Shown here: one piece after another, positions 26,315-40,287 of the stretch
How positions within the stretch are numbered: position 1 is the stretch's first letter
Layout of the letters: each line of letters starts with the position of its first letter
Source: Guillardia theta CCMP2712
Lineage: Eukaryota; Protista; Cryptophyta
Reading direction: 5' to 3'
NCBI RefSeq assembly: GCF_000315625.1
Contig: NW_005434650.1
Coordinates: 628,369-692,368, forward strand
Length of the DNA: 64,000 nucleotides
Program-made: the position numbers and the translations under genes
The notes under the pieces: model-generated
What the model was told of the DNA's origin: nothing
Seen by the model: the letters and a program-made list of their open reading frames with translations, nothing else
Database searches by the model: none

Positions 26315-28874
26315 TCATATCACGATGATGTTGTGCTTCACAGAAGAGGAGGAGGAGGAGGAGGAGGAGGAGGAGGAGGAGGAAAAAAGTCTCCATAGCA
26401 GTTGAGCTGCCCTCTCCCACGAGCGCACCCAGACCTCTGGTCGGAACAGGAAACTGCTCCTTCTCAGTCAGCCATCGCAAAGACGCCCGTCTCCTCACCT
26501 GCTGCTCCGAGTTGCCTGCAGCCTCCTCCTCACCTCTGCCAGCTTCTTGTAGCGGGGGAACGGGGGGCACTTGCAAGATGCGCCTGCTTCACAGCTGGGC
26601 TGCAGCAGGCGCCGAGCGATCATGAGGAAGTCCTCCTCGTTCCTAGCGGTGAGATGAGAGATGCCGAGATCCTCGTTGAGACTTGATCCTAGAACATGCA
26701 CACCGGTCAAAGTGGGAGTGAAGTGAATTTGGATGCCAGAAGAACGAGGAGGAGGGAGGAGGGAGGCAGAGTTGGGGGAAGGAGGATTGAGGATGGAGGA
26801 GGAGGAGAAGGAGGAAGGAGGAAGGAGGAAGGAGGAGGAGTAGGGAGGGAAGAGGAGGAGGAGGAGGAGGGAGTGAGAGCAGGAGTATGGGTAGTAGGGT
26901 ATTAGATGAGGATGGAAGATGGAAGGGAGCAAGAGCTTGCGAGGGAGGAGAGGAGAATACCAACTCGATCACAAAGTCGTTCTCCGGGCAGCGTAAGAGT
27001 TGGAACCCCCGCCCAGAGAGCGTCCGCTGCTGTGCCATGAGCCCCGTAGCGGAGCGTGTCGAGATGTATCCAAGCGCGAGACTGGGAGGAATGAGTCGTG
27101 AGTTGAAAACAAGGGGCAGGAGGAGGAGGAAGAAGGATGCGGGAAGGAATGATGAGGAGGAAGAGGGATAACAGCAAGACCTTGAGGCTGATGTGCTCGG
27201 ATTCTTCGCTCAATTCAGTGAATTTCAGTCGTTGAGAAGAGATGTTTATCGAATGTGCTTGTGATCTGAGATGTCCTGCAGCAACATCCGCGTTGTTTCC
27301 TGCAAGATTTGATCAGATCAGATGCACGTACAGCCTGGTTTCAACAATGGATTCTGCTGTCGTCTCAAAATGATACGAGAGAAGTGAACTTTGAGAGAAT
27401 GGCTCTATACGACATGTATCTTGTCGTTTTCATATGGATTTGCCTTACCATGCTTCAACAACCAGAGAGCCGAGTCGTCGTCCGACAGAAGAGCTCTCAT
27501 CCACAGCGACCAGGTTGACCTCCACAGAGTCGTCAGACACCACGAGCACAACCTACCTCCTCACCTGTCGATCTTCAGCATCCTGTTAAAAGACGCGAGA
27601 ATGGGGCGATGGCCACAAGTCGACGTATTGATCCCTTCCTCCTCGGCTTCCTCCCGCGGCTGCTGCTCAAACTGCCAGCAAGTTCAGCACCCTGGCCTGC
27701 CGGACGCGACGAGGGACCTTCTCGGGGTTTCCAAGAGGGGGATGAGGGAACATATGAGCATGATCGGTCGCCAAGAAGGTGTGGGGGAGAACGACAAGCT
27801 TCTCCGACATCATCATCGAGTGTTCTGGTGGGACAACAACCTTGTCCGACAGGTACAAGTCGATCCAACAGGCTCCCGAGGTCCCCGCGTAGCTCCTGAA
27901 CAGCAGCTGGAGAGGAGCTGGACGCAGAGCAAGGACGTCTGCTCGTGCTCCCTTCGTGTGGCCGTTGAGGTCGAGCAAGATCTGCAGGACTGAATTTCAG
28001 ATTCTAGGAAGCAGGAGGGGAGAGGAACAGAGGCAGAGGGGGAAAGCAAGCTTCTCGTCACCATGATCTGTGCGGAGGAGATGCTTTCAGCCAGCTCTTG
28101 GGAGGAGGAGCTACGGCCAGTTACTGGTTCGACGCCGTGGATGACGTTCTCGACAGCAGCTTCCACCCTCCTCCTGCACTGACTCCCATCGCTCTTTGTC
28201 GTCATGATTGCGACGATGTGGAACTTTCTTGTGCTGTGGCTGGCCAGAAGCGTCTGCATGCTTTGACAAACAGTGTGAGCTCCGAAGTCGCTGGACATGT
28301 ATCCTATCGTGATTCGCCGATCTTGCCGCTTGCTCAGCGTCACGACGAGCTCAGGTAGCAGCAGGCGGCAGCTCCTCGCAACATGGTCCGCGTGATTCCT
28401 GCTCACCTCCAGCTGGACTCTTGGGTTCACGTCGTACACCTGCGCCTCCCACGGGGTGAGAGAAGAGAGGTTCCCCCACCACCTGGTCTTCCTGCCCTCC
28501 TGCTGGGGTTGGAGCTGGTGAGGTATCAGTACCTTCATCATCCACTCGAAAAGCTCCTCAAATTCTTCCCACTTGCATAATTCCCGCAGTCGGAGCAGGA
28601 CGGACGCGAACGCGTTTGACAGCAGCTGCTCTCCACCTGGGAAACTCCCGAGCTCGAGAGCCTCCCTGTAGTACCTTCCTGCTGCAGGGAAGTTTCCCAG
28701 CTCCTTCTCAGCTCGTCCGAGGGCCCCGAGGATCTGAGCTCTGTGCGGGTCAACCACTGCGCCCCACCTGTGCATCTTGAGGGCCTTGTGCAAGTGTTCG
28801 CGAGCTTCGACGAAGTTCTCAATGTCCAGGAGGACGATACCGAGGTCCTCGTGCAGGAACGCTGAAGTATGACC

Positions 28875-28933
<59 letters not shown>

Positions 28934-29790
28934 CGTCGGAAGGGGAGGGCATGGATGAGCAGCTTGCGATTCCAGTTTGAAGCCACTTTCTCGCTTTCTT
29001 CAGCTTCTTGCCCTCCCTGAGCGTTTTGCCCATCCCAAGGAAAGCGTCGCATATCACTGCACGTTGGCAGACCTGGCTCCTTCCAGCAGAAACTTGGGGT
29101 TGAGATGATGGAAGCTTATGCGCCCCGCACAGGGTGAGCACCTTCTTGAATGACTTCTCGGCGCCCTCAAGTTTCCTCGCCTCCAACAGGGTCCTCGCGT
29201 ATGCGAGCAGCAGGGACATGTCTTCCTTCTGCTGCTCCATCAGCTCCTTGTAGATATTGAGCGCTTCCTTGTACCTGTTCAACTTTCGCAAGACGAGAGC
29301 ATACTTGACCCAGACCTGCGCGTTCTGTGGCCCCTCGGCAAGCGCTGCCTTGTAGTATCTCGCGGCGTCTTCATACCTCTCCAGCATGGAGTAAGCCTGC
29401 GCTAGGAAAGGAAGTGCAGCTGTTCGATGCTCCTTGAGAGCTTCTTCATAGCACCTCACTGCTTGCTCCCAATCGCTCTTTCGCTCAGCGATGGCGCATT
29501 TTAGCATCTGGTCATCCGTGCTTAGCTCCAACCCTGCCTCCTCTCGCTGCAAGATCGTTTGTTCAGCTTCATCGACATGTCCAAGTTGGAAGTGAGAGAG
29601 TGCAAGATGTGTGTAGACGATCGTCTTCTGCTGAGTTGACAGTTCTCGTTGGAATCTCCGCAGGAGTATGCTCAAACAACGCACAGTGCGCGAGAAATGA
29701 AGGGCTTCAACTGACCGGCAGGAAGCAGCCCAGGCTGAAGCAGCATATCCTTAGTGTCGCTCTCCTTGCATGGCTCGTTCAAACAGGGAG
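26315..29790 (-). CDS. TPR-containing GT41 protein O-glycosyltransferase (OGT/SEC-like); 5' end uncertain (near gap)
   Basis: Multiple TPRs in ORF 27813-29684; IGYMSSDFGAH, LDLNGHTKGAR..LALRPAPLQ, ASFNRMLKID, LDTLRYGAHGTAADALWAGVP, terminal FLFRPEVWVRSWERAAQLLW..IIVI*. Confidence 0.88.
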
Positions 29791-30738: not shown

Positions 30739-33104
30739 ATGCGCGGCCTCTGTGTTTGTCTGGTTCTTTGCTCCGTCACCAGCCATGTCTTTCCTTCCAC
30801 TAGCACGAATTTCTTCTACTCAGACGGGTATTGCTTGCCTTCAAGTTCCAAGGGTCTCAGAAAGGCTGCCGTTCCCGGCAGCAGGGAGAAACTGGGCGTC
30901 TTGGGCTCCTTTGGAACCGCGCTGCACTCGACAGAGTTGCTGGATAGGATGCTCTCTACTGTGAGGTTAAGAGGAGGATCAAACGCTGAGGGAGGCGAGA
31001 ATGAAGATGAACCTCCTCGTCCTCCTATCGATGACTATCCTCCTCCTAGCGAAGAAGGCGACTTCCGTCCCAACACGGGCCGAGGAGGCTACAGGGACGA
31101 CCGCGACATAGAGGACGCGCGGCATCCAGATCATGCAGACTCATGGCGAAATGTGGATGAGTATCCTCCCGAAGGAGACTGGGCCGATCGCCGGAGGGGC
31201 AGCCGATCCGGAGGCTACAGGTGTCACTCGACGATCCCTTCCTATCCTGACGCGATGAGCAGAAGGAGAGCTGGCGGGCGTGACAGAGGCTACGGGGGAG
31301 GCTTTCAAGTGAGCAACGGAGCTTATGTAGTAGCGTGAATGACGCTCGTGTGAGCAGGACGATGATAGAAACGATGATGGAGGCATCCCTCCTCCTCCAC
31401 AGGAGGACAGGTATCATGAAGGTCGACCAGCCGATCACCGCGATCCTCGGGATCGAAGTTTTCGAGAAGGCATTCTTCACAGGGAGTACGAGAGGGCACA
31501 GGATCCTGAGTTCGATCGGAGAGCCCCGACGAGGTGAGAGGGTCAGGAGCGACTTCTCAGCTCGAAACTCACATCCTGCCTCAGACCACCGTTCGATGAC
31601 TACGAAGATTCGAGAAGGCCAGAGAAGGAAAACGAACCTCCTGGGGGCCGGCAGGAGGCTCGAGATCTGGACAGGGCGGCTAGGCCTGTTCCTTACCTTC
31701 CACGAGGATATGACTATGAGGAGAGGTGAGGCTCGAAGTAGTCTCATGACAAACGAACCCCCTGACCTAGTCAAAGGAGGCGGTCAGGACGGTTTGACGC
31801 ACGAGGGCCTCCTTCCCCGTATGACCAGCGATCCCGGTAGATCCCTTGGGGCACATGGTGGCCACGAGTGTCCTGATAGCCTTCAGGTACGATCGACCCT
31901 TGTCTCCGCCCAGGTTCAGCCGAGGTAGAGAGCGCGATCCCCGCGACCGAGACCCAGCCGATCGAGATCGCTATCGAAGCTATGGGCGAGGCAGAGCCGT
32001 CGACCAGCCACCGTATGAGAGGGATGCCTACTGGTGGAAGCGATATTTGCTTGATCGCAGGGTTGACGAGCTCGAGCAGGTCAAGAGATCGCACTCCCAG
32101 CATCCCCAAGGATCGTCGCTACCCTGATCCCAGGTGGGGGTCGAGAGGAATTTTCAGCTGCACTATGTGATGTTGGTGAAGGGCCGGCGAACCCGTCAGT
32201 CTGCTGATTCGCAATCTCTCTCGCTCAACTACAGCGGAAACGCTTAGACAGGCAGACTAGTTTGCAGAAAGACGTGAGAACACAGCTGACTCTCCCATCA
32301 GGTCTTCAACAGGTTTGGGAGGATTCTAGACGTTTACATCCCTCGTTCCTATTACAAAGGCATCCCAAGGGGTTTTGCCTTCGTGGAGTTTGAGAATTAT
32401 CTGGACTGCAAGGTCACTGGTGATGCCTGTCAGCCTGTTGAGCTCACGGAGGCTGTGCAGGCGGCTCTGAGGAGCTACGACGGAACGAGACTCGACGGGC
32501 GAGTCCTCAGCATCTGCTACGCACAGTGAGCTGCCCGTTGATGTGCTGCCGTGGTACTGACGAGTCGCTGGCAAGAATGAATAGGAAGAGCTCGGGGGAA
32601 ATGAGGAGGAGGAATCGCCAACCTCGCCATCCTGAGAGCTACAAGCGCCCGAGGCTTGATTCTGTTGACGAAGGCGGGCCAAGAGACAATCGGGACGAGT
32701 TTCCTCCTCCTCCTCGACCCGGCAGCACAGAACCTTTCTCCCGCTCCGTAGATCGGAGAGCTCGTGAGGACGAAGATGCTTATCGTGGACCCGATGGGCC
32801 GGATCGAGATGACAGCCCAGGCAGAGGGGAAAGATGGAGGACGCACGAAGAGGCTGAGGCGAGAGCTTGGCGAGATGTGGAAGGGCCCGGTGGAGAGGGG
32901 AGATGGAGAGAGGACGACCGAGATGGAGAAGATAGGAGAGAGGAAGAGGAGACTAGAGACAGAGAGCATGGAGAGGAGCAGGAGTCCCATGACAGGGACC
33001 CTCCTGCTCCTGAAAATGGAGGATACAGTGAAGGCCAGCGCGAGCAAGGGGCATCAGAGCATCACGATGACAACTACAAGCCCGACGAGCACCACGAGGG
33101 ATGA
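30739..33104 (+). CDS. SR-like RRM protein (SC35/SCL-type RRM) with R/D-rich repeats and signal peptide + LRGG leader; multi-exon
   Basis: SLLIRNL (RNP2), DVYIPRSYYKGIPRGFAFVEF (RNP1), MNRKSSGEMR; RD/RS-rich flanks; N-terminal MRGLCVCLVLCSVTS...VRLRGGS. Confidence 0.8.
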
Positions 33105-33204
33105 AATTTCCTTCAAACATAACATATGTACAAGTATGCAATCCTGTCTAACCGAGTCTTGCTATAAATAAACTATGACCATGCATGGAGCCAGCGCCGA
33201 AATG

Positions 33205-36200
33205 TCATAGATCATCGTCCATGTCGATCTCCTTGCTCAACCAGATGCACTGAGGAGCAATCTCCTGTGATATCCCCCGTACGTGTGTCAGGACCTGATT
33301 GTAATGCACGTCTTCGAACTTGCCATGCTGCAGCCTCTGCTCGTAGGGAGGAAGGATTTCCATAAGCGCCCTCAGGTTATTGACCGCCTCGACCTCCACA
33401 CGCTGAAGGTGCCGCTGCAAGGAGTCGTTAGCACTGCTCTTCTGCTTATGAGATTCCAACTCGACCATGACGATCTTCCTGATCATGAACGTCAGCATCT
33501 CGCTGATGTTGACTTGGTTCCCAGGGACGCTCTGGTAACTTTGGGAGCACTTCCTGGTGACTTCCTTGGGCAGGGGAGGCGGCAAGACCGTGCGGGGGAT
33601 TCCGACGGGAACGAGGATGCTGGTAACGCTATCAGCTTCCTGCGAGCCATTTGAAGAGTTGATAGAGTCGTGCCGACTCCCTGACGTTGACACTCCGGGG
33701 CTGGCTGGAGCAACGAGCGACATCGTCATTCCTGCATTCCGACCATTCACACTGTCCTTGACTGTGCAATGATTGGCAGCGAGCGGGTGGCCAACCACTG
33801 CGTTCGGAGAATGCTTGATGACTGTTGGGTGAGGGTTCGCCATGCCATTGGGGTAAATCAGAGGAGCATTGTCCGAGCCGTTGCTTCCTTGACCTTGCTT
33901 TTGAATTCTCTTCGTCGCCATCAGATCTACAACGTAAGCCTCCGGTGCCTGGGGATGGCAAGGAAACCCTGCAGTGACGGCAGGTCGATCAGCACTTGCC
34001 CCTTTGCTTCCTCCAGACTTCCGGCCTTTCTTCGGCCCTTGTCTTCCTTGGCTCAAATTCACACCGGGCGGGTTCTTCAGCAGGCCTGGCACCTGAGAAT
34101 GACCATTGGAGAATTGCGAAGCAACCAATTCGTGAGGACTAGCAACAACAGTGTTCAGCCCCTGATTGAGTGTAAGATGTTGAGCTTTTCCATCCTTCTT
34201 GTCCCCTTTATATACGGAGCTCGCCAGCAGCGGTGATGTTCTGCTCAAAGGTAGAAGGGTTGGAAGCTGATTGCCCAAACTGACATGCGCCATCGATCCA
34301 GAGACATTAGAGACGGGCTGAGCATTCGAGATCATATTCAAGTCGTTTCTGACTGGACCATTCGAGCTGGGAACAACCGATAAGCTCAATTCATGTGGCT
34401 TTGCAATGGTTGTAGAAGGCACATTCGACTGAAGGACTGTCGGTGCTCCCTTCTCCATTCCCAAGTACTGTCTTTGCTGCTGACTCTCACCTTGGCTCAG
34501 AAACCTCGTCATGGCCTCCACATTGCTGTGCAGTTTCTCCAGGTCCTTCCCCCTCTCGGTCGACACAGCCATTGAAACATCGCTCGGGTTAATTGCTACG
34601 CCAGATGCCCGTGCATGTCCATTATTCTGAGGAGGCATCACACTTTGGGGGGAAGTTCCGAATTCGACGGCTCGAGGACCTTGTCCCTTCTTTCTCCCTT
34701 TCTTCTTGTTGTTGGCTTGACTTCGGTTTGTAGTGCAAATTCCTCCGAATTCATTTCCTTGAGCGCTAAGAGGATTCAATTCTGTGTGTTGAATGATCAC
34801 ACCGACCTCTCCTTGGTCCTTTGCAAGTTCACTGGAGTTCATAATGGCAAACGTTGTCTGAGCATCATTCCCACTTTCAGTCTTCACTGCATGGTTCATC
34901 ACAGCTGTAGAAACGTCATCTTTCTTAATGGCCGGCAGAGCATGCGAGTTTTCCAGTCCGTTCAACGTCAATTGCACTTCTGCTACCGTCTCTATCAAGC
35001 TAGAATTATTTGATTTCACCTCCAAAGTCAATGCTTCCTGACCAGAGCTTGCGGGTGTATCCTCTTTTGTGACTGAAGATTGCGGTATTGGTCCAGTATC
35101 ATTCTCCAGTTTCTTTTCGTCTGCTATGCTCTCCTGACTACACTTTTCTGTGGAGACGTTTTCTTGCTGTGATGACAAATTTGGTTGTGATTTCTCAGCC
35201 TCGGACGAACCAGCAACTGCAATTGGAGTCTGTGAATCAACGTTAGGGTTCAACACTTTGTCCTCTGATTTGACATGTTCATGGCTGGTCAGACTGAAAT
35301 CAACATCGTTGTCTACTTCCAGAAATTCAAAGTCTGCATGATCACCACCATAATCTTGGCGATCTTGCTTCTGTGAGTCCCCTTGAAGCTTGCTCTTCTC
35401 AGACAACAACAAGTGCTCTCGATGTTTCTTCAATTTCGAAAATCTATCCAGCTTCGTCATGCTGTTTGCAGCCTTTGTCCTCTTAGAAATCATCACAGAA
35501 TTTTCTCTGATGTTCTTCGAAAAAGGACGTAACCGCTTCAATTCTTGCAATTCTTTTCTTTTCCTGTTGAAAGCAAATGATTGCGACCTCTTCTTTTTCA
35601 ATCCAAGATCAAGAGCAAGTTTCGAGTTGTCACAACGAAATGCAAAGTGCTTCCGTTGCTCAAAGTTCTCGATTCCTCGGATATTCCCAACAACACCTTT
35701 CTGTGCTGCTTCTGAAGCTCCGAAGTCATCACACTCTAAATCCATTGGAAACTGAATCTTCTGTTCATATAGCCTCCATACTTTCTCCAAACCTGATTCA
35801 AAGCTTCTTATCCACCTTTCTGGATCGAATAGTGGAGCGCTTAATCGGTTAGCTTGCAGTTTCGTCTTCCATTCTCTCAACATCACCGGATCGTTTCCAA
35901 GTTTTACCGCCAATTCTTCATACTCCGCTAGATTCGATACTGCCATTTCAGGCATTCCGACAGACTTTGCGATACATGTAGCCACAAGCGAAGGCCAGTT
36001 ATCGCCACTGACAGTCACGAAGGGAACTCCAGCCCACAGCATATCACTAGCTGTTGTATGTCCGTTGTAAACAATGGTATCCAAGCAGAGGTCGGCCAGC
36101 GTGACTCGTTTGAGATGTTCGATCTTCGGGCTACAGGGTGGTCCAAACACAAGGCGTTCTGGGGGTATTCCTGATCGTTTCGCTTGTAGTTGTAGCCTTG

Positions 36201-38157
36201 GCACAGCTGCCTTCGGATGCTTGTATAACCAAATTACACTGTTCGGCACTCTACGAAGAATATTCATCCAGATTTGAAACAAGTCTGCAGTAATCCTACC
36301 AAGTCTGCAAAAGTTACAAAATACAACTGTTGGATGATCTGGGAGTTGATGATCGTCCCTGGTAGGAAGATTCTTTTGATCTAAAATTTCTGGATAAAGG
36401 TGACGGAAGGAGTTTGTCTGATAACAGTAAGGCATATGTAGAATTCGTTCAGTATAGAATTCCCGGTGCTTCTCTGGGCATACAGTTCGATCGGCGACGT
36501 TGAAATCGATGTAATCTGCCCCCATTGTGCCTGGATAAGCTAAGTAAACAAGCTGCACGGGTGCAGGGCGAAGCGCGCTGATTCCATTACGGTCCCCAGC
36601 AGTATGCCCATTCAAATTGACCAGGATGTGTATTCCATCTTCAGCAATCGCCTCTGCACATTTCTTGTCGTTGTCTCGTTGAGAAAAATTACGAAAATGC
36701 TCAATTTCTTGAGCAATTGTTTTTCGGTAATGCGAATTATCATCATCTCGTGTGATGGAGTAACAGAAAATTTCAAATTTAGAGTCGTCATGCAGCAAGA
36801 GAGCGCTTTGGATCAAGTCTGCTGTTGGATGGTCCACAAAATCTGAGCTGATATAACCTATTCTTAGACGCGGAATGCCATTTTCGGAAGGATTCAAGAT
36901 TATCTTTTCATCCCTCCATGCATGGTATTCATCGTCATCTTCTTTGTTCGGTTTTTGCTTGATGAGTTTCAAAGCTTTTTCCTTCGCATCTTTCGCATAT
37001 GCCTCCGCTATCCGTCGAATCGTACCCTTGTCAAAGCTTACTCCAGAAGAGGTGTAATGCAACGCATGAAAGGGCATAATGACAGGAACCTCACCATTAT
37101 CCAATTGATTCAATACATGTCGCACTAGTGGTTCAATATTTCTGTACCATTCCTCCCATGCGCACGCACAAAGCAAGTCAAACACAAGTTGAGAAAAGCA
37201 GTCTTGTCCTTTCGAGGAAATATCATTGCCTTCTAGCCGTTCTCTAGACTTAGCAATATTCTCTTTCAACATCTCATCGTACCGCTCTTGCCCAATGCAC
37301 TCGGGACAATGCCAAAAGTCAGGTGGAACCGTCGCATTACTGAGGCACATACACGCAAAACAGAATGACCGACAACACGAATCGCAGGTGGTCGACTCGA
37401 TCTCATGATATCCACACGAGCAGCACTGCAACGCCTGTTCTGGCAGCTTCCATGGACCTCTACATGTTTGACTTACAACCAGCACATGTTTTTCCAATTT
37501 TTCATGGGCGTGATGTATACAAGCATTGCATGTCCAGCGATGGGAAAGAGGAAAATTTGCAAGAATACCCATGCAGCTCTTATGAAAGCTAGATGGACAC
37601 TCAGAACAATGGACGTCAACTCCAGCATGCCCACATACATCGCAAAACCTCGAATTGTTGTATTTCTTCTGCAACTTTCGCAAGAGTTGATTTTCCGTTT
37701 CATTGGCGCCCGTAACAACCACTTCAAATTGATCCATTCTCTCTGAAAGAGCTTCTTCTGGAAGTATAGCGATCTCTGAATACGATACTTGGCTCCCCTC
37801 GCTGAAGGCCGACCCACAAGCTGGACAAAACTTCCAAACACCTAAATTTTCACGGATTAAGGGTCCCCAGAAGATACCATGGCAATGACTACAAATGTAT
37901 CCAGTATCTCTGCCAAAAAGTGGCTCCTCATTAAACCTCAAGCGTTTCCTGTTCCTTTTTGGACCTTTGCTATGCCGTTTTCGTCCAAACACGGTAGGCT
38001 TTGGACAAGTTTCTGGGGTATCCCTTGGACCTGTTTCTGGGGGTTCCTGTGGAGCAGTTTCTTGGGGGACGCTTTCAGGATGTTCGTTGACAGCAAGAGT
38101 GGGATCCGAATCGACATCATCCACTGCAACCAGTGAAAAGTCCGCCGTTGAATCCAT
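33205..38157 (-). CDS. Intronless 1650-aa Zn-ribbon + 2x PHD finger + GT41 (O-GlcNAc transferase-type) catalytic domain + long disordered tail
   Basis: CSHC..CPAC; CDVC..CSECPSSFHKSC..WTCNAC; CCSC..CDSCCRSFCFAC..WHCPEC; RIGYISSDFVDHPT, ILVNLNGHT, LRPAPVQ..YPGTMGA, KIEHLKR, LDTIVYNGHTTASDMLWAGVP; basic NLS-like patches. Confidence 0.9.
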   Translation of the reverse strand: MDSTADFSLVAVDDVDSDPTLAVNEHPESVPQETAPQEPPETGPRDTPETCPKPTVFGRKRHSKGPKRNRKRLRFNEEPLFGRDTGYICSHCHGIFWGPLIRENLGVWKFCPACGSAFSEGSQVSYSEIAILPEEALSERMDQFEVVVTGANETENQLLRKLQKKYNNSRFCDVCGHAGVDVHCSECPSSFHKSCMGILANFPLSHRWTCNACIHHAHEKLEKHVLVVSQTCRGPWKLPEQALQCCSCGYHEIESTTCDSCCRSFCFACMCLSNATVPPDFWHCPECIGQERYDEMLKENIAKSRERLEGNDISSKGQDCFSQLVFDLLCACAWEEWYRNIEPLVRHVLNQLDNGEVPVIMPFHALHYTSSGVSFDKGTIRRIAEAYAKDAKEKALKLIKQKPNKEDDDEYHAWRDEKIILNPSENGIPRLRIGYISSDFVDHPTADLIQSALLLHDDSKFEIFCYSITRDDDNSHYRKTIAQEIEHFRNFSQRDNDKKCAEAIAEDGIHILVNLNGHTAGDRNGISALRPAPVQLVYLAYPGTMGADYIDFNVADRTVCPEKHREFYTERILHMPYCYQTNSFRHLYPEILDQKNLPTRDDHQLPDHPTVVFCNFCRLGRITADLFQIWMNILRRVPNSVIWLYKHPKAAVPRLQLQAKRSGIPPERLVFGPPCSPKIEHLKRVTLADLCLDTIVYNGHTTASDMLWAGVPFVTVSGDNWPSLVATCIAKSVGMPEMAVSNLAEYEELAVKLGNDPVMLREWKTKLQANRLSAPLFDPERWIRSFESGLEKVWRLYEQKIQFPMDLECDDFGASEAAQKGVVGNIRGIENFEQRKHFAFRCDNSKLALDLGLKKKRSQSFAFNRKRKELQELKRLRPFSKNIRENSVMISKRTKAANSMTKLDRFSKLKKHREHLLLSEKSKLQGDSQKQDRQDYGGDHADFEFLEVDNDVDFSLTSHEHVKSEDKVLNPNVDSQTPIAVAGSSEAEKSQPNLSSQQENVSTEKCSQESIADEKKLENDTGPIPQSSVTKEDTPASSGQEALTLEVKSNNSSLIETVAEVQLTLNGLENSHALPAIKKDDVSTAVMNHAVKTESGNDAQTTFAIMNSSELAKDQGEVGVIIQHTELNPLSAQGNEFGGICTTNRSQANNKKKGRKKGQGPRAVEFGTSPQSVMPPQNNGHARASGVAINPSDVSMAVSTERGKDLEKLHSNVEAMTRFLSQGESQQQRQYLGMEKGAPTVLQSNVPSTTIAKPHELSLSVVPSSNGPVRNDLNMISNAQPVSNVSGSMAHVSLGNQLPTLLPLSRTSPLLASSVYKGDKKDGKAQHLTLNQGLNTVVASPHELVASQFSNGHSQVPGLLKNPPGVNLSQGRQGPKKGRKSGGSKGASADRPAVTAGFPCHPQAPEAYVVDLMATKRIQKQGQGSNGSDNAPLIYPNGMANPHPTVIKHSPNAVVGHPLAANHCTVKDSVNGRNAGMTMSLVAPASPGVSTSGSRHDSINSSNGSQEADSVTSILVPVGIPRTVLPPPLPKEVTRKCSQSYQSVPGNQVNISEMLTFMIRKIVMVELESHKQKSSANDSLQRHLQRVEVEAVNNLRALMEILPPYEQRLQHGKFEDVHYNQVLTHVRGISQEIAPQCIWLSKEIDMDDDL

Positions 38158-39228
38158 GTGAAGCGCTTTCTGCTTTCAAGGGGCTGATGGGTCAGTGCAG
38201 AAGATCATTCAGCATGCCAGGCGAGGCACAGACCAACGATCCTCTCACACAAGACGGTGGTCGACGTTGGGCATCTTGCAGAGAGAAGGGAGGGAGGAAG
38301 GAAGAGATCGAGGGGGAGGGGGAAGAGAGGGTAAAATTTCAGAATGAAGCAACGAGAAAGTGTGAGCCCCTGTGCAGCAACCACGGACTCCAGGAGGGGG
38401 AGGTCGGGGAGGAGGATGTCGTCTCCTGCTTCAGCTTGCCGCCCATTCTTGTCTCCCTCCCGAACGCCCGCCATGTGCTGCCACAAACTTCGAGAGCGCG
38501 CGGCCTGCCATGCTTCAAGAAGCTGAGCAGGGGTAGTTGTGAGATACGTTCTGCTGGTGGGGTAGTTCTGCCAGATCAGGAGGGGTAGTAGGCAGACGAA
38601 AAAAAAGGGTGGGTAAGGGGATATCTGTGCAGGGGGCCAATTCGTAGGGTAGGGGTGTGACCTCAACCCCTTCGTAATCATATTCAAAGTGTAGAAAATA
38701 GGGTGGGGGGTACAACAAGTAAATCGATTTTGACCTTGAGCTAGTATGCCAAGGGTAGGGTGATAGAATAATGGAGGGTAGGGGTGGTCGTGTGACCTTT
38801 TCTGTGAGAAGAAAGAACACGACCACAACAGTTATAAGATGTTTTTAAATTTCAATTATTGACAAGACATTTTTCAAAATAGAGAACAAATATTTCAAAA
38901 CAAATCAAACCAGTTTCAACCCGTTTGATAAAAGCGACATCGTTCCCCTAGCAAGACCTCTTCGGGTCGCAGTTCCTTTCGCAGTTCCATGCGCGAAAGC
39001 GACCACGGCAGGCACAGGATGGTTAAGTCCTCGAACGACACACAGAATGGGTAAGTCCACGAGCATGCTCCTCCTCTCCTCCGAGGAAGAGATAGTCTCA
39101 GGCGTCGGTGATGACAAGGAAGGATTGCCGGAGTGCTGAAGGTTTCCACCCCACAGACGTTGATCTCGAGGATCGAAGTGAGAATCTAAACTCCGATGCA
39201 GTCCTGCTCTCGGGGAGCGAACGTAGCA

Positions 39229-40287
39229 TCAGTCGGCTGCCTTCAAAAATTCTCCTCCTATGCTGCAGACCAGCTTGCCAACCCGCGTCTCCTCTCTCAT
39301 CTTTGCAATGGCTGTCTGTACCTCGGACATGCGGTAAACGGAGCTGAGATGAGGCCTGATCTTCCCATCGAGCACCAGGGGCCATACCTTAGTTCGTATT
39401 GCCTTGAACATCTTGTTCTTGAACTCCTCCTCGCTGTTGCGGATGGAGCATCCCAGCACTTCAACCTTCTTCTCTATCAACCTTTGAATATTGAATTTCC
39501 CCTCCTCCACCATGCAGCCTTGGAATACAAGTTTCCCCCCTGGTTTCAGCAACTGAATGTTGCGATCGATCGTATCTCCTCCTATGCAGTCTATCACAGC
39601 ATCCACACCCTTGCCGCATGTTGCCGTCCTTACGATCTTGTCGATGTCCTCTGTGTTGCTCTCACATGCGTAGTCAGCTCCCAAGGACAAGCAGAATTCA
39701 ACCTTCTGCTTGGAGCGACAAGTCGTGAAGACCTCGATGCCGAAGTTTCTTGCAACCTGGATCATGATGTGCCCGACCCCACCCGCCCCTCCATGGATGA
39801 GGACCGACGTTCCTTCCTTCAGCTCCGCCAGCTCGAACAGGCAAGACCATGCAACGCACAGGCCCAGCGGCATAGCAGCAGCGACATTCCAGTCAAATCC
39901 TCTAGGGAGCAGCAGCGCCTGTTGCTTCTTGCAAACACAGAATTCAGCGTAACCTCCGCCTGAGACCATCGCACAGACTGCTCCGCCCTCGACCATGCCA
40001 TCGGTCTCCTCATCTACGATCATGATCTCACCAGACACCTCCATGCCGATGATGTCGGTGCATCCTCTCGGGGCAACGAACCTTCCCTTCACCTGCTCCA
40101 AGTCTGCACCACTCACCGCGAACGAACGGACCCGCAGGAGCATCTCTCCTTCCCCTGGCCATGGAATCGGACGAGCATACATCGCTATCGCGTCCTCCTC
40201 CTTCACAGCCCATCCAAGCTGCTGTTGCTTCCCCGTCGGCTTCACCACCCTGGAGGGTCCGCATGCCTCCCCCACCGGCGCGCTCAT
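39229..40287 (-). CDS. NAD(P)H:quinone oxidoreductase, PIG3/zeta-crystallin (MDR) family; intronless
   Basis: DLEQVKG..IIGMEVSG, VSGGGYAE, VLIHGGAGGVG, GVDAVIDCIG, GKLV. Confidence 0.9.
   Translation of the reverse strand: MSAPVGEACGPSRVVKPTGKQQQLGWAVKEEDAIAMYARPIPWPGEGEMLLRVRSFAVSGADLEQVKGRFVAPRGCTDIIGMEVSGEIMIVDEETDGMVEGGAVCAMVSGGGYAEFCVCKKQQALLLPRGFDWNVAAAMPLGLCVAWSCLFELAELKEGTSVLIHGGAGGVGHIMIQVARNFGIEVFTTCRSKQKVEFCLSLGADYACESNTEDIDKIVRTATCGKGVDAVIDCIGGDTIDRNIQLLKPGGKLVFQGCMVEEGKFNIQRLIEKKVEVLGCSIRNSEEEFKNKMFKAIRTKVWPLVLDGKIRPHLSSVYRMSEVQTAIAKMREETRVGKLVCSIGGEFLKAAD

Follow-up and report, generated by a model that had tools for sequence, protein, structure and literature searches.

To our knowledge, all characterised eukaryotic GT41 enzymes (OGT, SEC and SPY) carry TPRs that choose their substrates, and reach chromatin solely via partners (TET proteins, HCF-1). 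Direct glycosylation of histones is still disputed. Histone-reader modules fused naturally to a GT41 domain would offer a direct test case for chromatin glycosylation. Here we describe a locus of the cryptophyte alga Guillardia theta, lying in a 64,000-nucleotide stretch of DNA analysed as a whole (the window), whose 1650-residue product begins with a basic patch and a zinc ribbon of the C4 type, continues with two PHD fingers, one C4HC3 (PHD1) and one all-Cys (PHD2), and then carries a GT41 domain, a tail and a C-terminal module. A preliminary description made from the sequence had supposed that GT41 combined with a zinc ribbon and a pair of PHD fingers, but lacking a TPR array, was undescribed. 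The architecture is real, conserved and transcribed, and neither PHD-GT41 proteins nor cryptophyte GT41 enzymes came up in our search of the literature. PHD-GT41 proteins are a small, previously undescribed GT41 family.

The coding sequence (33205-38157, minus strand; from the ORF list and translation) is a single exon beginning with ATG, with an in-frame stop six codons 5' of this start. Its earlier reading as a single uninterrupted ORF is supported by agreement among the ORF list, the translation and jointless contigs of several runs, with assembled contigs of runs X1, X2 and X4 tiling 33205-38157 with no differences and no splice joints. Contig depth and RNA read ends delimit a transcript of approximately 5.4 kb (33100-38500, minus strand; ends approximate), whose 5' end lies near 38480-38516, X1 and X2 contig depth falling past about 38471, and whose 3' end lies near 33100, one X4 contig stopping at 33105. 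RNA reads of run X18 are concentrated at the 3' end (33098-33495) with first mates on the minus, or sense, strand, and sparse minus-strand RNA reads extend to 36082. A 5-kb single exon is atypical for the intron-rich G. theta genome. This oddity, together with a GC content of 0.473 in the ORF vs 0.525 in the window, could point to an artefact in the form of a chimeric assembly or of two neighbouring genes merged in one ORF. However, contigs of independent runs from several studies are identical across every domain boundary, two paralogs, as well as relatives on unrelated contigs, have the same architecture and length, and PHD2 directly adjoins GT41 and folds together with it in the predicted model. 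Given the jointless contigs and the recurrent architecture, we rejected chimeric assembly and gene fusion, and consider an artefact of either kind extremely improbable. Since the ORF is low in GC and intronless, a horizontal or viral origin was also weighed; it is disfavoured by intron-bearing paralogs and by relatives at 52-67% identity, which favour vertical descent within the lineage. The PHD-GT41 locus is thus a genuine cryptophyte gene that is transcribed and has no introns.

The GT41 catalytic domain, comprising N-lobe and C-lobe (residues 318-800; 35758-37206, minus strand), was delimited from PF13844, alignment with OGT, and fold. The PF13844 match (1e-109, residues ~318-800) scores 367.6 bits, the cut-off being 25, and the alignment with human OGT, at 325 bits, falls into two blocks covering residues 318-596 and 597-797. 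Structural comparison by VIA-align gave Z scores of 41.7 to XcOGT, ~39.5 to human OGT and ~36 to SPY, spanning ~500 residues for the solved OGTs. With PF13844 at 1e-109 and Z of ~40 to solved OGTs, the catalytic domain is complete, as first proposed. The suggestion that it stands nearer OGT/SEC than SPY was upheld by identity and score (34-36% and 325 bits vs 22-24% and 147 bits), but the short inter-lobe linker first adduced for it is a weak argument and cannot separate SEC from SPY, because both are without the metazoan insert. This intervening domain is also absent from the GT41 domain described here. An apparent loss of the His498 equivalent was dropped as uninformative, because the P-F-H motif at this site is common to non-metazoan OGT/SEC.

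No TPR family was detected at E <= 1 in a Pfam search of the 1650-residue protein, in agreement with the initial impression that TPR repeats are missing. The only remnant is a stretch at residues 318-334 that aligns with the last half-TPR of human OGT. It belongs to a segment of connecting helices with the conserved motif FSQLVFDL (residues 293-353; 37099-37281, minus strand), identified from the OGT alignment and the predicted model, in which helices are seen between PHD2 and GT41. The model covering residues 152-830 has a pTM of 0.83 and, from PHD2 on, superposes on OGT residues ~381-1028.

Upstream of the catalytic domain, subfamily conservation defines a C4 zinc ribbon with a conserved SYS helix (residues 86-121; 37795-37902, minus strand). 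The ribbon had been noted from the outset and has the pattern C-x2-C-x17-C-x2-C at residues 89-118; it is kept in two subfamilies, that of the query and that of P0012, and block-mean pLDDT over this stretch is mixed (~60-90). PHD1 (residues 172-216; 37510-37644, minus strand) was assigned from Pfam, PDB sequence matches and Foldseek, and its original placement at residues 172-213 (37519-37644) was exact. Its ligands are spaced C-x2-C-x9-C-x2-C-x4-H-x2-C-x14-C-x2-C, with W-T-C. Matches by sequence in the PDB include AIRE, TIF1a, CHD4 and Rco1, and the predicted fold resembles the PHD fingers of BHC80, AIRE, CHD4 and TRIM24 at an rmsd of ~2 A. All top Foldseek matches are PHD fingers (BHC80 TM 0.73-0.77, rmsd 1.9-2.0 A), with weak E-values of 0.007-0.2 for what is a very small domain. 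The Pfam score of the query itself against PHD (PF00628), 17.7 bits, falls below the 24-bit cut-off that the aligned finger passes in a paralog and relatives (24.7, 25.1, 27.4, 28.5 and 34.2 bits).

PHD2 (C4-C-C3, residues 245-292; 37282-37425, minus strand), delimited by family profile, conservation and the predicted model, is the most conserved finger, with 13 invariant columns among 22 sequences. Its spacing is closely similar to that of PHD1, and the ligand-5 His of PHD fingers is aligned with Cys. The preliminary description had recognised it as a second, Cys-only PHD-like finger; consistent with this, its family profile matches only PHD fingers in the PDB, with KDM5B PHD1 at the top (E 3.7e-5). 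In the predicted model, PHD2 has a pLDDT of 86-91 and is packed rigidly onto the catalytic domain. The PHD2 Trp of most relatives is Ser in the query, and a residue comparison of PHD1 and PHD2 revealed neither a complete K4me3 aromatic cage nor any known histone-reading signature in full. A complex prediction of PHD1-PHD2 (residues 160-300 with 4 Zn) with residues 1-40 of the alga's H3, run without controls, scored 0.00 and weighs neither for nor against binding. PHD fingers have non-histone partners too, and these fingers might instead bind other proteins or nucleic acids, or brace an active glycosyltransferase with ordinary nuclear or cytoplasmic targets, as the incomplete H3K4-reader acidic and cage residues and the predicted packing of PHD2 in the manner of a structural element would allow. 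Against this, the nearest sequence and fold matches are H3-tail readers (BHC80, AIRE, KDM5B, CHD4 and TRIM24), and relatives have gained further chromatin readers in the form of Tudor and chromo-like domains; we judge non-histone fingers to be unlikely.

The PHD-GT41 protein is one of a family and not singular. At least three paralogs of such architecture are present in this genome and ~25 environmental clusters share it, with relatives of 1626-1830 residues likewise encoded by single ORFs that keep the N-terminal fingers and the C-terminal module. Their catalytic domains form a clade of their own (SH-aLRT 100) outside the eukaryotic OGT/SEC clade (SH-aLRT 99), and the tree contains no supported joining of the family to a bacterial group or to the OGT/SEC clade. 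Among relatives, a PTM/DIR17-type Tudor domain was identified (28.9 bits vs a Pfam cut-off of 27.2), and one further relative has a full-length chromo-like match of 19.2 bits, below its cut-off. These additions independently support a chromatin context. An NLS-like N-terminal basic patch was located by pattern scan (residues 59-72; 37942-37983, minus strand); its sequence is unconserved, and basic patches recur among relatives. Further patches occur in the tail at residues 854-868 and 1151-1157, those at 59-72 and 854-868 corresponding to the NLS-like patches first reported. Such basic patches suggest that the protein may be nuclear. By BLAST and composition, the tail (residues 831-1530; 33568-35667, minus strand) is rich in Ser, Asn, Lys and Pro, and BLAST revealed no conservation of it with relatives. 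The tail of ~800 residues initially described as mostly disordered is hence unconserved over ~700 residues, but its last ~100 residues are a conserved module that had been overlooked. This helical module (residues ~1545-1641; 33235-33525, minus strand) can be aligned to the C-terminal ends of P0002, P0003, P0004, P0006, P0007, P0014 and P0027, and searches for known relatives returned only a chance match when its profile was run against the PDB (E 0.48) and nothing usable from the protein Atlas.

Lys842 is essential in human OGT, and we know of no GT41 with Arg at this site that has been assayed to date. In the query, the site table identifies a remodelled diphosphate-binding loop, FCNFCRLGR (residues 614-622; 36292-36318, minus strand), which differs from human OGT by N838C, Q839R, Y841G and K842R. 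The resulting R-x-G-R motif (R839, G841 and R842) is invariant in 19/19 family members, and is found in none of the 29 other GT41 sequences in the table, nor in TPR paralogs of the same genome. Since it replaces Q/N-x-Y-K, the essential, diphosphate-bridging Lys (human K842, SPY K665) has become Arg, which is Arg621 in the query and is shared by all 19 members, as opposed to Lys in 29/29 others. Y917 is also invariant in the 18 members whose sequence spans the site (P0071 ends short), and K898, H901, R904, H920, T921, T922 and D925 are identical in the query and every complete member. Catalytic-domain identity across the family is 45-66%, and no other part of the protein is as well conserved. 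Conserved UDP contacts and invariant R839, G841, R842 and Y917 are not what would be expected of a domain in decay. Non-catalytic roles are known for OGT, and K842R, Y841G and Q839R might likewise have ended transfer here, leaving a pseudoenzyme or sugar-nucleotide sensor in which GT41 serves as a UDP-sugar/peptide-binding scaffold brought to chromatin by the PHD fingers. Replacement of the catalytic Lys in every member is in keeping with such a loss, as is the finding that SPY K665 is essential and that its mutation kills SPY (PMC9715652). However, Arg retains the positive charge, the paired Y841G could give its longer side chain space, and a scaffold would have no need for such strict conservation of the other nucleotide-binding residues; we thus view loss of activity as improbable. 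Should the family prove inactive, it would constitute the first conserved GT41 pseudoenzyme family.

Donor use among GT41 enzymes is reflected in clan signatures, L866/R904/C917 for the UDP-GlcNAc-using OGT/SEC-like clan and K689/A731/Y744 for the GDP-fucose-using SPY-like clan (PMC10027727). The query has Y645/R684/Y697 at the former positions and does not match the signature L/R/C, which is found in the compared eukaryotic OGT/SEC sequences bar the divergent, long-branch P0052; against the SPY signature it reads Y/R/Y, with Tyr alone in agreement. Structural work indicates that Tyr at the Cys917 position, as in SPY, leads to a clash with the GlcNAc N-acetyl group (PMC10027727). The 'O-GlcNAc' label originally attached to the protein is consequently doubtful in view of Lys842 to Arg, Tyr841 to Gly, Gln839 to Arg and Cys917 to Tyr. 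Taken together, the Arg-for-Lys diphosphate loop and the Tyr-for-Cys sugar pocket suggest that the donor sugar of the family may not be GlcNAc. Counting against the chromatin-docked transfer proposed below, no O-GlcNAcase (GH84) was detectable in the alga's genome.

From these features, we propose that the TPR superhelix responsible for substrate selection in OGT, SEC and SPY has been swapped for a zinc ribbon and two PHD fingers, the all-Cys PHD2 being joined rigidly to the catalytic mouth via two helices and the last half-TPR remnant. The protein would enter the nucleus by way of its basic patches and dock through its PHD fingers, aided in relatives by a Tudor or chromo-like domain, to a histone tail or other chromatin protein. 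The GT41 domain would then move sugar from a UDP-sugar to Ser/Thr of the bound or an adjacent protein, using an Arg-built diphosphate loop in place of the universal Lys and a sugar pocket with Tyr in place of Cys, with a donor that is possibly not GlcNAc. On balance we lean towards this explanation of a transcribed PHD-GT41 gene and chromatin-docked transfer. The gene, its domains, their conservation and the altered active site are established here, whereas residence in the nucleus, binding to histones, enzymatic activity and the identity of the donor are inferred. As a hypothesis, the reader-writer idea is plausible. A more specific version, in which PHD fingers (joined in some members by Tudor or chromo-like domains) recognise histone tails and the Arg-based GT41, with its Tyr-lined sugar pocket, adds a non-GlcNAc O-sugar such as a UDP-sugar-derived hexose to histones or nucleosome-bound proteins, is offered tentatively as possible; given the active-site changes, the incomplete K4me3 cage and the putative nature of H3 binding, self-targeting histone glycosylation would be hypothetical. 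If this version were true, both the chromatin mark and the enzyme chemistry would be ones so far undescribed in eukaryotes. The fusion has been kept across the family and re-formed with Tudor and chromo-like domains. Sugar transfer to chromatin may be hard-wired in this alga, and the invariant Lys-to-Arg and Cys-to-Tyr changes represent a natural experiment on diphosphate binding and sugar choice in GT41.

Comparison with known systems places these features in context. Both fingers share the cross-brace ligand spacing and the Trp-x-Cys-x2-Cys end (P-x3-W-x-C-P-x-C in PHD2) of the H3-tail-reading PHDs of BHC80/PHF21A, AIRE (PHD1), KDM5B (PHD1), CHD4 (PHD2) and TRIM24, which are their top sequence and fold matches, but the His ligand of these readers is Cys in PHD2, and their K4me0/K4me3 acidic and cage residues are only partial here. 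With OGT/SEC, the family shares the catalytic GT-B fold (Z ~39-40), 34-36% identity to human and fly OGT, the UDP-contacting residues listed above and, with SEC, the lack of the metazoan intervening domain; identity rises to 38-42% for OGT/SEC from oomycetes, plants and green algae, in alignments that span 92-100% of the domain and take in the pre-N-lobe helices. It differs from them in lacking a TPR array, in possessing PHD fingers together with a C-terminal module and a long tail, in reading C-R-L-G-R in the query for N-Q-L-Y-K in the diphosphate loop, in having Tyr for both L866 and C917, and in forming a separate clade with a long stem. SPY, which has TPRs and shows the low identity noted above, agrees in Tyr744 (human C917), in a small residue at the Y841 site (Ala in SPY, Gly in the family) and in lacking the intervening domain, whereas its Ala at the uridine-reading R904 site is Arg in the query and its guanine-reading Lys is Tyr (PMC10027727). 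Further comparisons are with the 'intermediate' GT41 enzymes that prokaryotes and stramenopiles possess (PMC10027727) and with bacterial TPR-GT41s. R904 paired with Tyr917, as in the present family, is common in the bacterial relatives. The best fold match of the query, XcOGT, is itself a bacterial TPR-GT41, and bacterial sequences reach 40-44% identity over ~72% of the query domain, leaving its first ~110 residues unaligned. Unlike the PHD-GT41 family, all of these 'intermediate' and bacterial enzymes retain both the catalytic Lys and their TPRs.

The query, a 1650-residue PHD-GT41 protein, is encoded by 1650 uninterrupted codons on the minus strand of the window (33205-38157), opening with an ATG that follows an in-frame stop six codons upstream; every coordinate in the preliminary description proved correct to within a few codons. 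A 6924-base contig from public run X1 spans 32700-38214 with no differences and no joints, and contigs from two other studies (X2 and X4) likewise tile the ORF with no joint, an RNA origin being only a guess for all three runs. Contig depth falls steeply past ~38471, and one X4 contig stops at 33105. In X18, a true but 3'-biased RNA-seq run, the raw reads represent mainly the 3' end of the gene: they pile up at 33098-33495 with first mates on the minus strand, and same-strand reads scatter sparsely as far as 36082. The read and contig data fit a single unspliced transcript of ~5.4 kb. As contigs cross the ORF without joints, the public runs give no sign of a chimeric assembly, and we consider an artefact highly improbable. 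Immediately ahead of the ATG, the X1 contig is interrupted by a short inverted repeat, and a further repeat lies in the likely 5' UTR (38185-38209 and 38278-38328). The GC content of the ORF is 0.473 against 0.525 for the window (GT41 part 0.444, GC3 0.41), with GC3 reaching 0.74 in the last 120 codons; this low GC goes together with an absence of introns. The upstream neighbour (39229-40287, minus strand) resembles zinc-type alcohol dehydrogenases and quinone oxidoreductases (ADH_zinc_N 105.6 bits, ADH_N 34 bits).

Pfam searches bore out two central features of the preliminary description, namely a complete GT41 catalytic domain (PF13844, E 1.1e-109, 367.6 bits, cut-off 25) and the absence of TPR repeats, no TPR family matching the query even at E <= 1. 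Human OGT gives the best sequence match among solved structures, scoring 325 bits over two segments (residues 318-596 and 597-797), ahead of fly OGT (300 bits), Xanthomonas OGT (166) and Arabidopsis SPINDLY (147); the query lacks an equivalent of ~109 residues of the human intervening domain.

The protein is no isolated oddity: paralogs in the same genome and metagenome relatives make it a member of a family. An initial search recovered metagenome proteins of 1173-1830 aa, 52-67% identical to the query, which share its fingers and GT41 domain and likewise lack TPRs. Because the extreme C-termini of relatives align with query residues ~1545-1641, the entire layout of fingers, enzyme, long unconserved tail and terminal helical module is conserved; for the helical module itself, neither the PDB nor the Atlas yielded a relative. 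When 1.84 billion representatives were searched exhaustively with residues 75-330, only 83 matches reached E <= 0.001, of which the 18 at E <= 1e-10 were family members, mostly fragments, and the remainder ordinary PHD proteins matching the first finger, PHD1. One relative is a single ORF on a eukaryotic contig of 17-26 kb, where the two neighbouring genes checked are 46-56% identical to G. theta genes. Three partial members on contigs of 1.4-1.8 kb (P0141, P0142 and P0169; MGB1600255.1, MGB1596124.1 and MGB1598059.1) carry the NCBI label of a 'Promethearchaeia archaeon' MAG; at 90% identity they share clusters with PHD-GT41 proteins of eukaryote type from two subfamilies, and their contigs are most likely algal and mis-binned into an Asgard archaeon genome.

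Within the G. theta assembly (87,145,349 bases, 669 contigs) we identified at least two further members, both on the plus strand and with an R-L-G-R loop. One lies on the query's contig ~130 kb away (G000:C24:793000-795750; L015 3015-5733) and is split by short introns, in contrast to the intronless window copy; the other is on contig 23 (G000:C23:328000-330700; L014 6013-8691), with a PHD match of 24.7 bits. GT41 is greatly expanded in this genome, where PF13844 matches 83 times at exon level across more than 25 loci. Among these is an ordinary gene ~4 kb downstream of the query gene (27742-29684, minus strand), whose ORF at 27816-29684 matches TPR models many times and contains the beginning of PF13844, with further GT41 exons at 27742-28472.

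The canonical C4HC3 PHD of the preliminary description was upheld in its ligand spacing, with a Trp two residues ahead of the final Cys pair, and in its fold, although the query's own copy (residues 172-213) scores 17.7 bits, below the Pfam cut-off of 24; in one paralog the aligned finger reaches 24.7 bits, and in relatives it scores 25.1, 27.4, 28.5 and 34.2 bits. In an AlphaFold model of residues 75-330, built from a family alignment of 22 sequences (mean pLDDT 74.8, PHD1 ~90), the top Foldseek matches in the PDB were all PHD fingers, including BHC80 (TM 0.73-0.77 by target, rmsd 1.9-2.0 A), AIRE, CHD4, TRIM24/33/66, UHRF1 and the tandem PHDs of NSD3 and DPF3, with E-values (0.007-0.2) that are weak, as expected for a 50-residue domain. 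Of the fingers, the second, Cys-only one, PHD2 (residues 245-292), shows the strongest conservation, with 13 invariant columns across 22 sequences. As every PDB sequence retrieved by its profile is a PHD finger (KDM5B PHD1, E 3.7e-5; BHC80, 4.5e-5; then KDM5A, ATXR5, ING1/2/4/5 and AIRE) and a Cys occupies the His ligand position, PHD2 is, by this profile, a genuine PHD with ligand set C4-C-C3, in keeping with the original proposal. A zinc ribbon, C-x2-C-x17-C-x2-C (residues 89-118), is also conserved in two subfamilies. Judged by profile and model, both fingers most closely resemble readers of the unmodified H3 tail. PHD2 ends in P-x3-W-x-C-P-x-C and has two near-invariant Glu; the ING/BPTF cage Trp position holds Trp in most relatives and Ser in the query, and we therefore predict no particular histone mark.

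Some relatives possess additional reader modules. Between PHD1 and PHD2, P0071 and P0069 carry a PTM/DIR17-type Tudor domain (28.9 bits, cut-off 27.2, and 23.8 bits), and the N-terminus of P0186 gives a full-length chromo-domain match below threshold (19.2 bits, cut-off 25.1). Of the indirect evidence for a chromatin role, the strongest is this repeated pairing of the catalytic domain with chromatin readers of different types. The tail of P0007 contains a sub-threshold PDZ match (residues 1330-1398; 20 bits, cut-off 23.2), and the tails may conceal lineage-specific modules.

A second model, covering residues 152-830 (30 aligned sequences, mean pLDDT 81.8, pTM 0.83), joins PHD2 (pLDDT 86-91) to the catalytic domain without a break by way of helices at residues 290-353, and the last half-TPR of human OGT finds its match in residues 318-334. 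From PHD2 onward the model superposes on human OGT ~381-1028 (Z ~39.5, 34-36% identity), on Xanthomonas OGT (Z 41.7) and on SPINDLY (Z ~36, 22-24% identity). Based on the aligned ranges, PHD2 and its helices may sit where the last TPRs would, at the mouth of the active site. We regard as rather unlikely the alternative in which the enzyme is active but its fingers engage partners other than histones, or serve solely to brace the domain.

In a search confined to the catalytic domain, named oomycete, plant and green-algal OGT/SEC proteins are 38-42% identical to the catalytic domain over 92-100% of its length, and bacterial TPR-GT41 proteins 40-44% identical over only ~72%. In a maximum-likelihood tree of 48 catalytic domains, all of them other than SPY (quick search, LG+C20, SH-aLRT support only), the 19 finger-bearing sequences form one clade (support 100, stem 0.96), and a eukaryotic OGT/SEC clade (support 99) includes two metagenome sequences earlier labelled bacterial; the tree gives no supported branching order among these two clades and the bacterial group. 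The finger-GT41 family stands as a separate lineage, clearly nearer OGT/SEC than SPY and not inside OGT/SEC.

Mapping human OGT positions onto the same 48-domain alignment, we found H558, T560, K898, H901, R904, H920, T921, T922 and D925 kept in every complete family member. The human loop N838-Q839-L840-Y841-K842 becomes C-R-L-G-R in the query, and Arg839, Gly841 and Arg842 are invariant in 19 of 19 family members, a Tudor-bearing one included. Lys842 is kept in all 29 other sequences of the alignment and in the four ordinary G. theta GT41 paralogs with a readable loop (L001, L007, L008 and L010). The human K842M substitution is reportedly inactivating. Mutating the equivalent Lys of SPINDLY likewise abolishes activity (PMC9715652), and a conserved pseudoenzyme or sugar-nucleotide sensor could share such a loss; we give this reading a low probability, and the strict conservation of the unusual residues argues for function rather than decay. 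Three positions seen by SPINDLY cryo-EM govern donor choice (L866/R904/C917 in UDP-GlcNAc users, K689/A731/Y744 in the GDP-fucose user), Tyr at the Y744 position clashing with the GlcNAc N-acetyl group, and an intermediate group of prokaryotic and stramenopile enzymes shows mixed patterns (PMC10027727). The query has Tyr645/Arg684/Tyr697: Arg684 points to a uridine nucleotide and Tyr697 speaks against GlcNAc, although Gly at 841 may reshape the pocket.

We consider it somewhat more probable than the alternatives combined that the query is a nuclear glycosyltransferase, its PHD fingers directing the GT41 enzyme to chromatin, where the domain would use a UDP-sugar as donor. A six-frame search of the whole genome found no match to GH84 O-GlcNAcase (PF07555), and any sugar added would not be removed by the canonical eraser; plants likewise lack this enzyme. 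Full-text literature searches turned up no publication describing a PHD-GT41 protein or cryptophyte GT41 enzymes. Public protein databases presumably include the gene model, and the domain combination may therefore appear in automatic architecture tables. Compared with characterised systems, GT41 chemistry is already familiar; what is new is the set of targeting modules and the Arg-based loop.
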